From: Diadema antillarum
Lineage: Eukaryota
Length of the DNA stretch: 64,000 nt
NCBI RefSeq assembly: GCF_040938485.1
Contig: NW_027270939.1
Span: 434,001-498,000, forward strand
Reading direction: 5' to 3'
The notes beneath the pieces are model-generated. The model worked only from the letters and a program-made list of their open reading frames with translations. It was not told the DNA's origin and made no database searches. A program made the translations under genes and the position numbers. This document shows, one piece after another, positions 22,701-31,700 of this stretch; the stretch's first letter is position 1; each line of letters begins with the position of its first letter.

Positions 22701-25700
22701 TTTTCTTTTATGATGAACAATTGCTATTGGTTTTTGGCATTTATGGCCAGACTATACGAGGGCACCGTGAATTCAAAAAACTTCTTCATTATGGACAGCT
22801 GGCCCTGAGGGAACATTACTTACCGACTCAAGGACCAGTCCTAAACCAGGTGCACGAGGAATGTCCAGTTTCTCCTCACCAAATGCCCTCTCAATGATGG
22901 AGGGGGGAGCCAGGCCCCTTACTACAGCTACCACAAGACCTGAGACCACAAGAATGAAACAACAATGTGTGTTTAGGTACACATCTGTATCAATTTAGAT
23001 ATATCTATCCATCTGTCTGTCTGTCTCGCTATCAATCTATTATCTACAATGTATCTGTCAGTCTGCATGTCTATCCATCTGTCTGTCTATCTGTCAATCT
23101 ATCTATGATCTATCTATTTATCAAACTATTTGTCTGTCTGTATAATCTTGTGTATGAGCAATTAGTAATAATGGTCTTCACTGGAGATGTGGGGGGGGGG
23201 GGGAAACAGCATTATGATAATCTTTCTCTGAAAATAAATTTCACAAAGTCTCTTTGCTAGAAAAAACAAACAAACATATATATGTATAATATCTTCATGA
23301 TAAGAATGATGGGCTTGTATGCCATGCAATTACAGCAACATACACTTTCCAAACATGATCTTTATGCAATTGGTTTCAATAACTTGATTACAGGAGGATG
23401 CATCTCAGATGGAAAGTTATCTTGTTTGAAAGCAGTGCCTTTGCATCCCGAGACTCACCAATCATTTTGCGGATCTGATGGAGCATGAAGCTTTGACCCT
23501 TGACCTTGATGATGGCGAACTCGATTCCGTCATCGACAAAGCCTTTCTCGCAGTAGAACTCTTTCATGTACCTATTGGCACTGGGATCGTTAAACAGCCT
23601 GGAGATGTGGGGGAGAATACGGGCATTATAATAATCTTTCCCCAGAAGGAAAATAAATATCACAGATTCTCTGTGCTAAAACATGAATGAACTCTAATAC
23701 CTGTATTGAATTCAGTGTTAGAATCACAAATATGTGTATAAAGTATCAACAGAAAAGAAGTGTTAAAGGGCGATGTGGTATGATGGCCTGGACTGAAATC
23801 TACCCAATAAATGTAATATGATTAATTATTCCTGTTCAGTCAAATGCTTGCTCATACAAGGAGAAACACTTTCCACATGAATGTCCCCAGTAAAAAAAGT
23901 CAATAATTTGTGGACATGACAACTGAATTGTTTTGGTTTTGCATTTCAGTCCCATTTGCAAGACAAGTTACAGTATTCCATAACAATAATAAAAGAAAAA
24001 GATGGGGTTCAGCACAGTTTGTAAGCTAGTTGAGAGTTGAAGATTTAATTAACTTCTGTTTTACTCCATCCTCTTTAACAGCAGAAACATACAAGGGTCT
24101 GGCTATGGGTCAGTCAAACTCTTGATAATTCTATAATCTGGAGTCAAAAGGGGCCAAGTTTTCGATCCTAGCAGAATCTTCGTCAGTGGCAAAATGACAA
24201 ACAGGCAGGGAAAGCAATCACATATAAGGACTACACACAACAAGAACAGTCAGGAGAGGGCTAGGGACACAGAACAAAGGAAACAAAAGTGAAGGGTTGG
24301 AAATCATGGGCAAAGAGCCCAACAAGTAAAAAAGAAAGGGGGATTAAAGCAGGAGGGTGGACAGACAAGAGGTAGAGGAGGGTCAGTGATGATCCCGAGG
24401 ATCAAGGGGGCAACCTGTGAAGGATAAGGATGAATACTTAACCTGTTGGGCTCTTTGCCCTTGACTTCCAACCTTTCCCTTTTGTTTTCTTTGTCCTGTG
24501 TCCCTAGCCCTTCCCTGACTGTTCTTGTTGTGTGTAGTCCTTATATGTGATTGCTTTCCCTGCCTGTTTGTCATTTTGCCTCTGACAAAGATTCTGCTAG
24601 GATCAAAAGCTCAGGCCCCTTTTGACTCCATTTTACTCCATTAGCTCGCCACTATTGGATAAGCAGTTTTCAGCAGCTTTTTTTTGTTGCTACATTTAAT
24701 TGATAGATTAAACGAGAACTTACCTGTTTGTAGTTTGATCTCAATTATATGAGTAATATTACGGAAGGGATTACGTTGACAAGAGAGACCCGCTGACGCA
24801 TGCGCAGATTCCCCAATATTCGTAGAAAACCGGTCATGGCTAACGAAAACATAGATCAACGAGAACTTTCCACTGTAGTTTGAATACACAGGGAGGGAAG
24901 GGAGGGACGTAATCCCTTCCGTAATATTACTCATATAATTGAGATCAAACTACAAACAGGTAAGTTCTCGTTTAATCTATCAATTATACTTCGTAATTCC
25001 GTCAGGGATTACGTTGACAAGAGATTTTAAAGCCGTTAGCCATGAACGGCCTATGTAAATTAATGGCTTATCTATGCAGTAGGTATTTACCTGCATTAAA
25101 TGGCCCTGTAGTCAATGTGGGGCTGGCTGCCATTAATTCTGGTGGTACAGCTGTGGATTGCTTTTGCTCAGGATCACAGCTGCAGCATAACTTCTCCTCG
25201 TTTCCAGTGGTTTGTTGTAGAAATTTCTAAATGTCCTTTCTCCAGCCCAGCCTGCTTGTGCCAGAATTTGACTGATGGGCAAATCCGCACACCTTGCGGC
25301 TGATGTCGTAGCTGCTCGGGTAGAGTGGGCTGCGTAAACCTGAGTATTTATCCCTGCAGCTGAAAGCGTGCTCTTGATCCACCTGGCTATGGTTTGTGAT
25401 GTCACGCGATGATGAGGCTTCTTGAAGCTAATGAACAGGTAGCGCTCCTTGCCTCGTAATGTGCTTGTTCGCTTGATGTAGTGCTGCAGATAGTTCACCA
25501 CACACAGTCGTCTGTCTGGTGGGAAGGCCCTCATCGACAAATTGAGGTTAGCGTTTCCTGGCCTGCTGTGCTTTAAGAGGTCCTTGAAAACAAATTGCGC
25601 AAAGCTGGTTTTTAGCTGCATGTGGTCGAGGTGAAGATTGTGCAGCGACTGTACTCTCTGCGCAGAAACTAAGGCCATTAATGTGCACAGTTTCCAGGTC

Positions 25701-28700
25701 AACACTTTCAAAGAAAGTGTCTTTGCAGGTGCCCACCTACGAAGTTTATTAAACACTATGTTCACATCCCAAATCTCACGATATCTGGGTAACGGTGGGC
25801 GAAGATGAAAAACACCTTTAACGAAACGCGAAATGAGTGGATGTTTTCCAACTGGACAATTATCCTCCAATATCAAAAACGAAGAAAGTGCACTACGTGC
25901 ACTGTTGATAACACTGTAACTACAACTTTCATCATAAAAAAGAACACTTAAAAATTCCAGCACGTCATTTGCTTGTGCTGTTAGATAGTTCAAACTACGC
26001 TTTGTACAAAAGGACTTCCATTTCCTGATGTAAACCCCATACTGCTTTTTTGTAGATTTTCGCCACGATGCTGCGATGATGTCAACTGTTCTTGAATTCA
26101 GTCCATCTCTGCTTAGGGGTTTTCGCAGCACCTGAAACAGAGCAGATCAAGTCTGTCATGCAGGGGGTGAGGTTCTCCCGTTCCAGGGAGCGTAAGCAAC
26201 TCTGCACTATGTCTTAATAACATTGGTCTTTCAGTGGTCAGGGACATTAATACAGGGAACCATGGTTGGGTGGGCCAGTTTGGTACAACTACGATGCCTT
26301 TTGCTTTGTCCTGCCTAATTTTTTGTAGGCATCTTGAGATAAGACAGAAGGGAGGAAAGGCATAGAAATCCAATGGACCCCAATCGAGTGTGAAGGCATC
26401 TACATTTTCTGCCTCTGGGTCTGGCTGCCATGCTACATATCTTTCTACTTGTTTATTTAGCCTTGATGCAAACAAGTCGATTTCTGGGGTACCATAGTGA
26501 CTGGCAATTTCCTGGAATTTTGCTGGATTTAGCATCCATTCAGACCCATCGTTAAACTGTCTTGACCTGTGGTCCGCTTCTACATTTAATTTTCCAGGAA
26601 TGTGGGACGCAGTGATCCAAATGTGCTTATGTATGCACCATTTCCAAATTTCTTTTGCGGCATCATTACAGTTAGGGGACTTAACGCCTCCCATGTTGTT
26701 TAGATATGCTACAGCTGTAGTGTTGTCTACACGCAGCAAAACATGCACATCTCTTAGTTCTTTGCAGTACGACTTGAGACCATGCCCAGCCGCAACTAAT
26801 TCAAGATAATTGATGCCACTATGCTTTGCGTTATGTAGTTCCTTCTCACTCCATCTTCCCCCAGTACTACTGTGGAGGTTTGTGGCGCCCCATCCTGCCC
26901 CACTGGCATCTGAGCGCAATTCTAGATCTGCTTTCTTTCTTTGGATTGGTGCGAAGGCAGTGTGAATGTTCTCTACCCACCACTGAAGCTCCTGTTTTGC
27001 TTCGGTGGATAGTTCCATTTTTCTATCAAAGTGACCTTTGTTTGCCTTCAGAGCTTGAATTTTGTCTTTTTCCAGTTCACGATAGAACAATGGACCATAC
27101 TGTACTGCCGGAAAGCTTGCTACAATCTTTCCGATCACTCGTGCTACTTGCCTAATTGAAGGTCTATTCATATGTAGCAAGTTAGCGCACAGATCTCTGA
27201 TTTCTGTCATTTTTTCTTCTGGCAGACTGATAGACATTTCTACAGTGTCAAGCATAAAACCAAGGAATTTTATTTTCCTGGTCGGATAGAGCACTGATTT
27301 TTCTGGGTGCACCACAAACCCAAGATGTGTGAGAAGGCTTACTGTTGTAGCTATGGATTCCTTCAGTTTCGCTTCACTTTCACTGATCAGTATGGTATCA
27401 TCAAGATATCCAATAACGATGTGGCCCAATCTTCTCAGTGTTGCAAACACTGGTTTCAGTATTTTAGTGAACAAACGGGGGGCTGAGCTAAGCCCATTTG
27501 GCATTGCTTTGAATTGCCAACACTGGTCACTGAAAGTGAAATGTAGGAATTTTCTGTCTCCATCATGTACTGGGACTGAATAGTAGGCATCTCGAAGGTC
27601 GACTGAGGCTAAGAAATTGTTTGGAGATATCAATTCCAGTACTTTGTGAATATTGTCCATCTTGAAATGACGATACACAAGATACTTGTTTAACTCTGAC
27701 AAGTCCAGAATTAACCGTATGCCCCCATTCTTTTTGGGGCGTGGGAATACATTGGAGATGAACTCTCCTTCCACATGACTGCATTGCTCAATAACATTTT
27801 TTGTCTGCAGATTTCTGATTTCTTCATGCACACGAGCATTGTCAATTGAATTTCTCCGAAAGGAGTGAGGATTTCTTGTGCTTGTAGGGGGGAATTTTCC
27901 CTCCTTAAATTCCAATTTCATGCCAGAAATTGAGTTCAGAATGAATTGATCATGTGTCACTGTCCTCCAATTATTTCTAAATAGCCTCAGTCGACCTCCA
28001 ATAGGCCTATCGTGTTTCAATGTACTAGATCTAGTGCCAAGTCTAGTGTGATTAGGTAAGCAGAGATTACTCACCGTTTCGGCGGTATCAGCTCCTACTT
28101 CCTCCGATGGGAGTGCCCCCCTCGCTGGGCTGTCTGTTGAGTTGCCTGGCTCGACGAGCTCAGCGTTTGTGTGTGAGGTGGTGGCTGCCTGCCCCTCCTG
28201 TTGTAATTCTGGCCTAAAAAAGGTCCAGCAGTAGATCCAGCTATCGGTCTGTTATATGCAGCATGCTGAAAACCGCGTCCTCTCTGTGGATACGGCCTAC
28301 TGAGCGAGCGCTGATACGCCGCGATTGGTCTCGCCCTCCCTTGCGATTTCATGACTCCAGCTGCTGCTAGCTGTTGATCTTTCAAGTCCTTGACTTGTTT
28401 TCCTAGATCGTCTCCAAACAGTAGACGGGTAGCAGGGAGTGATGGCTTACACAAATGTGCAAATCTAGAGTTTATGTCTGGTTTGATCAGCTCCTTACGG
28501 AGACAGTTGAGCTCGAAATTCGCGTTGCAAATCAGAGCGAGGGCATCTTGCTGCGTATCAGACATGCGACCTGCTGAGAGCGATCTTGTGAACGCATTTA
28601 ATCCCTTTGTAAGCGATTTTTGCACCCGTTGTAGCTTTAAATCCCGACTCTTGGTCGCTGGTGGCAGAAAATCCCAGATAGGCGGATTCACTTTGGGCAC

Positions 28701-31700
28701 ATCGATGAGTTGACAATTGTTTGGAGAGGGATACTTTCCAACCACATCCTCCAGAACTTTCAGTTCGAGTTGGTGAGTCATGAGATAGGTAGTCGACTTT
28801 GCCACTTCATCGTCTATTGGATCCCCAATGTCAGTGGGCATCGCGAATTTAGCTGCTATGGTGGGGATCTCAAACTGTTCCACTTGGGACTGCGGGATCT
28901 GCTCTGCGTGGTCGAATCCAGACGCAGTATCGTCGTCATGATCTATCATGTACATATCCAGTTGCCCAGTGGGCGAGTTATCCGGCAAGTTCATGTCCGC
29001 GTGTGGCGCGGTTGGATAGTATGCACCCCGCATACTCATATCTTGCTCGCCACTGCCCGTGGCGGTCGCCATGTTGGCCGGCGAACGCGATGAATTTGCG
29101 GTCGCTTGTGGTAGAGCTTCGATAACTTTTGAAAGCAAACTTTCCATTTTGTCAAGCCTTTCGGCGAATTCAGTCATATGAGCAGAAGTTTTTTGCTGTG
29201 AAGATCCCGCTACGGTTTTGGCAGTACCTTTCTTCACCTTCGTATTACTGACCGACGAAGCGATCGTCTTCTTCGCGGTGTTACTGATAGCTACTGCGGC
29301 CTTACCGCTTGCGTGTTTTTCTACCGGGATACCGACCTTGCCGGTGCCCGGAACCAGCGGGCCAGCTTTAGCGGGCGCCGCTGGGGTATTGGGAGAGGCA
29401 GCCGTGCTCGCCTCCATACCGATCGTTAATTTTTTGATAACGGAAACGTGAAATATAGTCTCGAAAGTGACTTACACTTCGACTAAGAGACTTTAAGTTT
29501 CAATATTCCACTAAAGCGCTAACCTATTCTTGAGGATCGCGCCGATATTTTCAGGGGAAAAAACGGGCATCCGAAGCCGTGCTTCAGTGCAAATGCGCCG
29601 TCAACGAATTGGGGAATCTGCGCATGCGTCAGCGGGTCTCTCTTGTCAACGTAATCCCTGACGGAATTACGAAGTATAATTCTATAATCTGTCACAAAAA
29701 CTGCCTTGTTTGCTGATGCTGAGCAAGCCCAGTTTTATATCATGTGTACACTGAAAGCAAAAGGATTGCATTTTGAACTTCAATGCAAATTTTATTGCTA
29801 GTCTACACACTTGATACCTGCTTTTGGACAGTATCAACTCTGAATTCACTTAACAATACCCTCTTTCAAATTACAGGATGTTAATTGGGTCTGAAAAGCT
29901 TGGGCAATGCATCACGTTCTAATCTCCTTTACAGATCCTGTGAAAAGCTGATTAAAGGGTGTGTCAACACTGAAATGTACTGTGCACTTTATGGCGGCTG
30001 ACCCATGCCAAAGTTTGAATGCAAGAGATAGAGAGAGAATCAATATCCACTCACTTTCCAGAGGTGAAGTTGTGAAAGTTGTGGGTGCCAATGTACTTCT
30101 GTAATTGTGTATTCACTTCTGTCATCTTCTCATCTGGAAGGGGAAAAAACAGTAACACTGTATTTATACCAGTAACAAGTTACATCTTCGTCACTGCATG
30201 GAACTGAGATTCAGATTCTTAATAATTAACTTTCACTAAACGTGAGCTGCTGAAGGCCCACGATTTCACCTATCAAAACACAGATTATTTCTAAAAACAA
30301 TCAACAAATAAGACAATGAACACGTTGAAGACGAGTCCTGAGAATACTCGGGCAGGTGTCTATGGGAAATGCGTGTTATAGCTAAATTAGTCCGTCCTCA
30401 ACAGGTTAAGATAAAATTGACACTGGGTTAAAGTGCTTTGAAAAGTATTGTTATTATCCAGGGCTCCACACTAACCAATCTTTTTTTCTACTGTACAACC
30501 TGTCTGACAGACCAGTAGGTGCCCAGTTTTTCCATGTTTTACTGGTCCATTCCTGAAAACGTCTACTGGTCCGACAGTGATTTTTACTGGTCCCGGACCA
30601 TCGGACCTGTGCCAGTGAGCAGCGTTGTATTATCACTTGATATTTGGTCAAGAATATTTATTGAATGACAGAGCCGTCAAAATACTTTGTGAAGAGGGAA
30701 TTCACCTGTGACTCGGTATTTCTCCATAGAGATGTCCTCCAGGGGTGTGAAGGCAAATGTGGGCAGTAAGTACATGTAGGTTCTGTACTCGCAGTTATTT
30801 TTGCTGTTGAATCCCCCCGTCGTCCGCTTCACTCCTATCAGGGGGGAACACAAAAGAGGACAAATTCATTTCTTCACATTCATTCTAGATCAAAGATGAG
30901 AAACTATTGCTCATGTAAGTTTTGAGCTTGACTTATCAAGATGATCTCACATACCGTAGAGAAATGTACTTAGGATCTAGTACTGTATACGCCATATATT
31001 TAGCGAGTCTAAATTTTCGCGAATTGGGACTTACCGACGATTTCGCGAGTGGTTAAATTCGCGATCGTGGAGTGCTGTACTGAACGGAGAAATGTATACG
31101 TGTGGGTCACATTCATATCGGGATCAGAGTCATTATTTTGGCGTGTCTTTAATTTCACGAATAGCACCCGACTCGCGAAATTCGCGAAAATAAAAACCTC
31201 ACAAAATATTTGGCGTATACAGTAAATGGGGGAAAAGGTGTTTGATATAAAGAGACACTTGTTTTATTGTAATGTAGTGTTATGACATTCTGAGACATGA
31301 CAGCTTATTGTTTGTGTCCAAAGCACCTTATTGGTTAATACATATGTTAAGATGCCTATTTGTTTGGATAAATATTTTACATCTGATACAGAATGAGAAA
31401 TATCCCAGTGGGAGAGCAAGAAAAAAAAAGGGGAAAAAATGTAATAAAATAAGACATGACAAGACAAGGAAAGGCAAGACAGAAAAAAACATGAATGATC
31501 ATCCCTACCCATGACTTTAATAGCTTCTGGTAAGTGTTTGTTGATTTTCTCCACAAGATTGTCTAGCAGGAGGAGCTTGAGGGAGACGACCTGACCGGCT
31601 GCCGACACGCCCTTGTCCGTTCGGGCACACCGCTGGAAGTTCATCTTGCCCATGTTTTGACCGTGATCTGGAGGAATGGCACCGGACTTGACCAATGCCT

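Follow-up and report, generated by a model that had tools for sequence, protein, structure and literature searches.

How does a retrotransposon express an enzyme whose reading frame offers no AUG in its first 151 codons? The question is raised by a complete DIRS1-like retrotransposon on the minus strand (24697..29683) of the window analysed here, a stretch of 64,000 nt from the sea urchin Diadema antillarum. The element is bounded by inverted terminal repeats and has an internal complementary region; its inverted repeats I1–I3 (43 nt at 100%, 60 nt at 95% and 80 nt at 100%) are not LTRs. It contains three ORFs. The first, gag (28095..29417, minus strand; 440 aa), runs from an ATG at 29417 to a TAG at 28097-28095, and is homologous to the ORF1 proteins of sea-urchin DIRS elements. 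The second, pol, encodes RT/RNase H/MT in the -1 frame (28251-26113, minus strand; TAA at 26115-26113) and matches Pfam RVT_1 with E = 1.1e-22, a profile score that covers the RT only. Pfam gave no match to a methyltransferase-like domain in the ORFs of the window element; the MT-region motifs FYAFPPF and WPTQPWFP were spotted by eye in the translation and align with relatives. The third frame, a further -1 relative to pol and overlapping it by 19 nt, is open over 26146-25136 and matches PF00589 Phage_integrase (E = 1.4e-7) together with the SAM-like N-terminal domain PF13495. It encodes the tyrosine recombinase (YR), for which 135 homologues were retrieved. No aspartic protease family appeared among the Pfam matches at E <= 0.01 for any of the three ORFs. 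With a YR, an RT ORF, inverted repeats and an internal complementary region, and without a protease, the element belongs to the DIRS1-like retrotransposons.

A sibling copy (L093), 98.9% identical over window positions 24711-29683 (4976 nt), keeps all three ORFs intact as well as both of the splice sites described below. It lies on a 5023 nt Tara Oceans metagenome scaffold (TARA_SAMEA6040077); the plankton sample evidently contained sea-urchin DNA, from larvae or gametes. Gene calling on this scaffold recovered gag and pol and missed the ATG-less YR. About 370 nt upstream of the window element, on the same strand, there is also a host-like exon (30133-30054, minus strand), bounded by ccttccAG/ and /GTGAGT (slashes at splice sites mark exon boundaries), whose product was judged by eye to be pseudouridine-synthase-like. 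The element would therefore occupy a host intron in sense orientation, where its strong splice sites could disturb splicing of the host gene.

An answer to the question of recombinase expression was put forward in a preliminary description of this stretch, which read the RT gene as an optional intron (26132..28074, minus strand), and the particulars on which it drew are all present in the sequence. The proposed intron would measure 1943 nt and hold nearly the whole RT/RNase H/MT ORF. The consensus donor ACG/GTGAGT that it had named occupies 28069..28077 (minus strand), so that the exon ends at 28075 and the intron begins with G 28074. This site matches the consensus MAG/GTRAGT at 8/9 positions and follows the gag stop by 20 nt, the distance given in that description; in the rest of the element, 2.5% of 60-nt windows contain a donor match of equal quality. 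At the other end, a pyrimidine tract and acceptor, ctgctctgtttCAG, lie at 26132..26145 (minus strand) with the AG at 26133-26132, preceded by a branch-point-like CTTGAT (26146..26151, minus strand) whose A at 26147 is 16 nt upstream of the exon. CTTGAT matches the yUnAy branch-point motif, which is expected 15–40 nt upstream of an acceptor. The full context reads cttgat-ctgctctgtttcag/GTG, so that the exon starts at 26131 with the first codon of YR, as had been claimed, and extends through 332 codons and a stop (25133..26131, minus strand). Both sites are in phase 0, also as proposed, the donor at a codon boundary of the -1 frame and the acceptor at one of the YR frame. The description had further held that the YR frame is closed by a TGA five codons upstream and lacks a Met for more than 140 residues; the TGA is at 26149-26147, five codons before the GTG at 26131, and the first Met is residue 152. 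Upstream of the donor, exon 1 holds a -1-frame leader of 59 codons (28075..28251, minus strand), which also contains no AUG and ends ...ADTAET. The predicted junction would join ADTAET in phase 0 to the YR frame from GTG 26131.

These features suggest a scheme in which a single RNA, transcribed from the 5' end of the element, would serve for all three ORFs. Unspliced, it would be both the genomic RNA and the mRNA for Gag, and a -1 frameshift at a slippery heptamer T_TTT_TTA in the gag frame (28215..28221, minus strand), which precedes the gag stop by 124 nt and lies on the upstream side of the donor, would yield Gag-Pol (RT/RNase H/MT). In a fraction of the RNA the host spliceosome would join the donor at 28075/28074 to the acceptor at 26132/26131, removing 1943 nt. 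Most ribosomes on the spliced mRNA would still produce Gag, stopping 20 nt before the junction, while those that shifted at the same heptamer would read the leader across the junction into YR and make a Gag-YR fusion of about 780 aa. This would account for expression of the recombinase despite the lack of an AUG, since with none in the leader and none in the first 151 YR codons no entry into YR other than the -1 shift is evident on the spliced RNA. As DIRS elements have no protease, the scheme would also provide a separate Gag tether for each enzyme. We put the probability that an optional intron combined with a single gag-pol frameshift yields Gag, Gag-Pol and Gag-YR from one RNA at roughly 0.7. 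Splicing of this particular copy, use of the frameshift, the fusion protein and escape from nonsense-mediated decay (NMD) are all four things that we infer from the layout of the element.

Relatives were gathered via the YR homologues and their contigs, plus a metagenome scan. Restricting these to distinct elements with a locatable gag end gave a set of 20, with recombinases 35–70% identical to that of the window, including a Strongylocentrotus purpuratus family, a Diadema copy, a clam (Ruditapes) copy and many marine-metagenome elements. Conservation of donor, acceptor and phase in other DIRS1-like elements had been named in the preliminary description as a check on its proposal, and the outcome was positive: phase-0 YAG acceptors were found, and 20/20 elements, which share kinship and are not independent events, have a 5' splice-site motif 2–38 nt past the gag stop, in phase 0 of the -1 frame. 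The conservation of phase is in part trivial, since both flanks are coding and tolerate only indels in multiples of three. The gag stop would accordingly precede the junction by 2–38 nt in all of these elements, which would be compatible with the 50-nt rule, a rule of mammalian NMD.

Motifs of this kind might be by-products of coding. In that case there would be no functional splicing, and YR would form the C-terminus of a Gag-Pol translated from unspliced RNA, reached in the pol/YR overlap through another -1 frameshift or through termination-reinitiation, as its -1 position relative to pol and the 19-nt overlap might suggest. The composition of the donor is not explicable by protein coding, however. 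In logos tallied from short anchored stretches around the splice sites and aligned on the GT, information across the 20 donors is high only at -2A, -1G, +1G, +2T, +5G and +6T, moderate at +3 and +4, and near 0 bits in both flanks. Information confined to the splice positions is typical of metazoan 5' splice sites and not of a conserved peptide. Nine elements have AGT as the second codon of the intron and six have GGT, yet across these pol ORFs AGT accounts for 17% of the codons for Ser and GGT for 32% of those for Gly; such exclusive use of AGT and GGT indicates constraint on the nucleotides and not on the amino acids. Two relatives have tandem overlapping donors 4 nt apart, GAG/GTAG/GTGAGT (L013:1751-1760) and GAG/GTAG/GTAAGT (L014:1809-1818), and in each pair YR stays in frame only if the first donor is used.

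A phase-0 YAG is found at the 5' edge of the open YR frame in each of the 20 elements, mainly in one of two places, the site used in the window (26132) or about 210 nt upstream; in two elements there is a third position, at -75 and -84. The acceptor was assigned by openness of the YR frame and not by the best pyrimidine tract, since a picker based on the tract mislabels some elements of the first kind and the sequence coding for FYAFPPF is pyrimidine-rich in any case. Twelve distinct elements, including the window and a skate copy, have a YAG homologous to 26132 (class A), and 34 have none there and encode the usual end of the MT domain, ...AC(H/R/K)LSG (class B). The homologous site differs between the classes in pyrimidine content at -24..-4 (0.64 in class A against 0.44 in class B) and in the presence of a YTRAY branch-like motif (8/12 against 1/34). 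In most class B elements the phase-0 YAG is found about 210 nt upstream, where the pyrimidine-rich stretch coding for FYAFPPF ends, and their pyrimidine tract thus comes free from coding; the class A acceptor lies within a stretch read in two frames, which would be conserved anyway. From the upstream YAG to the conserved N-terminus of YR, the YR frame is wholly open in 22/22 class B elements, whereas in class A the same interval carries 3–12 stops in the YR frame, and in several elements the last such stop is the TAG of the acceptor itself.

The opening of the YR frame therefore tracks the position of the acceptor, as expected if translation enters YR from an upstream exon, and this again speaks against an origin of the splice-like motifs in coding. 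The window's clade has lost the FYAFPPF/S acceptor, and its putative new one lies 210 nt downstream in the same phase. Most relatives have the acceptor inside the conserved MT motif FYAFPPF/S, with L019, L035, L049, L052, L056, L058, L063, L074, L088 and L092 among them; in these, about 70 extra codons rich in Ser, Glu and Asp are open in the YR frame. None of 59 related loci is a processed, intron-less DIRS copy; all keep pol-derived sequence upstream of YR.

The overlap between pol and YR was compared as well. A heptamer-like string, A_AAC_CCC, lies in the pol frame at 26116..26122 (minus strand) and abuts the pol stop; ribosomes slipping by -1 on it would come into the YR frame at ...KPLS. 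Relatives do not keep this string, and among 19 elements no slippery heptamer is conserved in the pol/YR overlap; moreover CCC in the A site is poorly suited to -1 slippage. For want of conservation, we rejected a second -1 frameshift at A_AAC_CCC as the principal route. MT and YR do form one continuous frame in some distant relatives (P0061 and skate L091), which agrees with delivery of YR on the end of Gag-Pol and means that the superfamily has more than one solution, splicing being not the sole possible route. With the donor composition and the shifting acceptor set against it, expression of YR from unspliced RNA through the overlap nevertheless seems decidedly improbable as an account of the window element, and the pol-spanning intron is probably a real and functional alternative intron.

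The heptamer on which the optional-intron scheme depends is, by comparison with the pol/YR overlap, well conserved. In 18/19 elements a T_TTT_TTA or A_AAA_AAC heptamer lies in the same place, within the gag/pol overlap and upstream of the donor. The 120 nt that follow the window heptamer showed no significant stimulatory RNA structure (MFE z = -1.08, from a tool that does not model pseudoknots).

Gene models in public annotation include the same junction. NCBI models in both S. purpuratus and D. antillarum hold the homologous splice junction, which we checked in both cases on genomic DNA, and a 90% cluster of the S. purpuratus YR holds several NCBI models, although Gnomon models from NCBI can be partly ab initio. 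In S. purpuratus, XP_030847864.1 (P0123, 367 aa) reads ...EEIATPLPKE/VMRQHFENRG, in which the post-gag -1 leader runs into YR across the homologous sites. In the Spur_5.0 DNA (L090) this corresponds to a 1958-nt intron, GTAAGT...TTGCAG, frame 0 of which is the stop-free pol ORF, and the junction also maps onto a Logan contig (L006). A search with the S. purpuratus junction peptide (region 1-60 of P0123), made against cluster representatives only, found no further proteins. In D. antillarum, a 658-aa model (P0235) that contains PF00589 consists of gag, the -1 leader and YR, joined at ...ALPKE/VLKLPF.

The models raise the further possibility that the intron is real and that YR is reached on the spliced RNA without a frameshift, either by reinitiation past the gag stop at a Met beyond the junction or through a second, small intron in gag that would give a Gag'-YR protein. 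In S. purpuratus and in L001 an ATG lies one codon past the acceptor, and the NCBI isoforms X2 of S. purpuratus begin at a Met just past it; the long models P0127 (S. purpuratus) and P0235 do reach the -1 frame via a small extra gag intron (2224-2303 in D. antillarum L094, 80 nt, GT..AG). Reinitiation would have little to work with in the window, where neither the -1 leader nor the 151 codons past the junction hold an AUG. The small gag introns occupy different positions in the two species, and at neither of these does the window have a GT donor. Gene modelling has no means of representing a frameshift and would be driven to invent an intron of this kind; these introns are probably the modeller's stand-in for the shift. 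We therefore consider a frameshift-free entry into YR unlikely.

A recombinase that starts independently would need neither the intron nor the shift. On this reading translation would begin at an ATG or near-cognate codon at the head of the ORF, the RNA being either unspliced or made from an internal promoter, and the missing ATG of the window copy would be a simple loss. Many relatives do begin MLQ..., with ATG TTG CAG before the junction in L005, L009 and many homologues. This ATG is missing, however, from the window, L001, L010, L011, L013, L014, L015 and L016, whereas the CAG or TAG never varies; where present it sits 6 nt inside the intron; class B has no conserved ATG at the acceptor; and the sibling L093 is likewise without the ATG although its three ORFs are intact. 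We regard an independent start as very improbable. The MLQ start was rejected as a candidate, its ATG being both unconserved and inside the intron.

Expression by an optional intron and a single frameshift thus remains our preferred reading, and the conserved sites, the homologous NCBI introns, the upstream heptamer and the absence of AUG codons all support the Gag, Gag-Pol and Gag-YR products foreseen in the preliminary description. On balance we also lean, if more cautiously, towards a broader proposal: splicing of the pol gene together with a single frameshift may be a general and ancient means of YR expression in metazoan DIRS1-like elements, with the parallel Gag-YR fusion standing in for a protease, and with one or more moves of the acceptor between the FYAFPPF site and that of the window that left the frame intact.

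To our knowledge, reviews of DIRS elements describe only overlapping ORFs, many without a start codon, and leave the expression of the recombinase open. The window element shares with Dictyostelium DIRS-1 and published DIRS1-like elements the gag, RT/RH/MT and YR ORFs, the inverted terminal repeats, the internal complementary region, the overlapping pol and YR frames and the lack of a protease (PMC3266345, PMC7192593). In those descriptions YR is treated as an overlapping ORF (PMC3266345, PMC7192593). The words intron and splice are absent from a 2011 overview of DIRS1-like elements (PMC3266345), the only intron in a 2020 Dictyostelium study is an artificial reporter intron (PMC7192593), and the Xenopus, nematode, kinetoplastid and ALOG papers likewise make no mention of introns or splicing. 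Expression of the recombinase by splicing out pol was found undescribed in the literature searched, a scope without Goodwin & Poulter 2001 and Poulter & Butler 2015.

If the scheme is true, it provides a concrete route to the DIRS recombinase, with Gag, Gag-Pol and Gag-YR from one transcript, and adds to the known uses of host splicing by retroelements a layout in which the donor follows gag instead of preceding it. It would also suggest a rationale by which a retroelement without a protease delivers two enzymes to its particle. There is a consequence for annotation too, in that the YR ORF is split or missed by gene callers and NCBI pipelines emit Gag-YR "genes" uncommented.

The frameshift has a close parallel in HIV-1, whose -1 programmed frameshift heptamer is U_UUU_UUA. 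The heptamer in the window is identical and likewise lies in the gag frame within the gag/pol overlap, but unlike in HIV-1 this one shift would be used on two mRNAs, each leading to a different downstream enzyme. In retroviruses (env, accessory genes; the foamy-virus pol mRNA) the unspliced RNA is both genome and mRNA for Gag and Gag-Pol, and spliced RNA expresses the downstream gene. The DIRS scheme resembles this in having one promoter, a host-spliced RNA for the downstream gene and splicing that must stay partial. The major donor of retroviruses lies in the 5' leader and gag is removed by splicing, whereas here the donor lies just past the gag stop, gag is kept and pol itself would be removed; again unlike in retroviruses, the downstream enzyme would be entered only through the gag-pol frameshift, as a Gag fusion. 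Among Ty1/copia elements, Drosophila copia, barley BARE and Arabidopsis Copia are described as producing spliced gag-only RNAs that give extra Gag (PMC3735527, PMC5580714). What is common to Ty1/copia and the DIRS element is that host splicing drops pol sequence to make a second mRNA from one transcript; the difference is that in DIRS splicing would bring a third ORF, the recombinase, into frame. Splicing that removes pol, as in copia-type elements, and splicing to reach downstream genes, as in retroviruses, are thus already known, and what appears to be new is their arrangement here, with the donor past the gag stop, pol as the intron, and the recombinase entered through the gag-pol frameshift.
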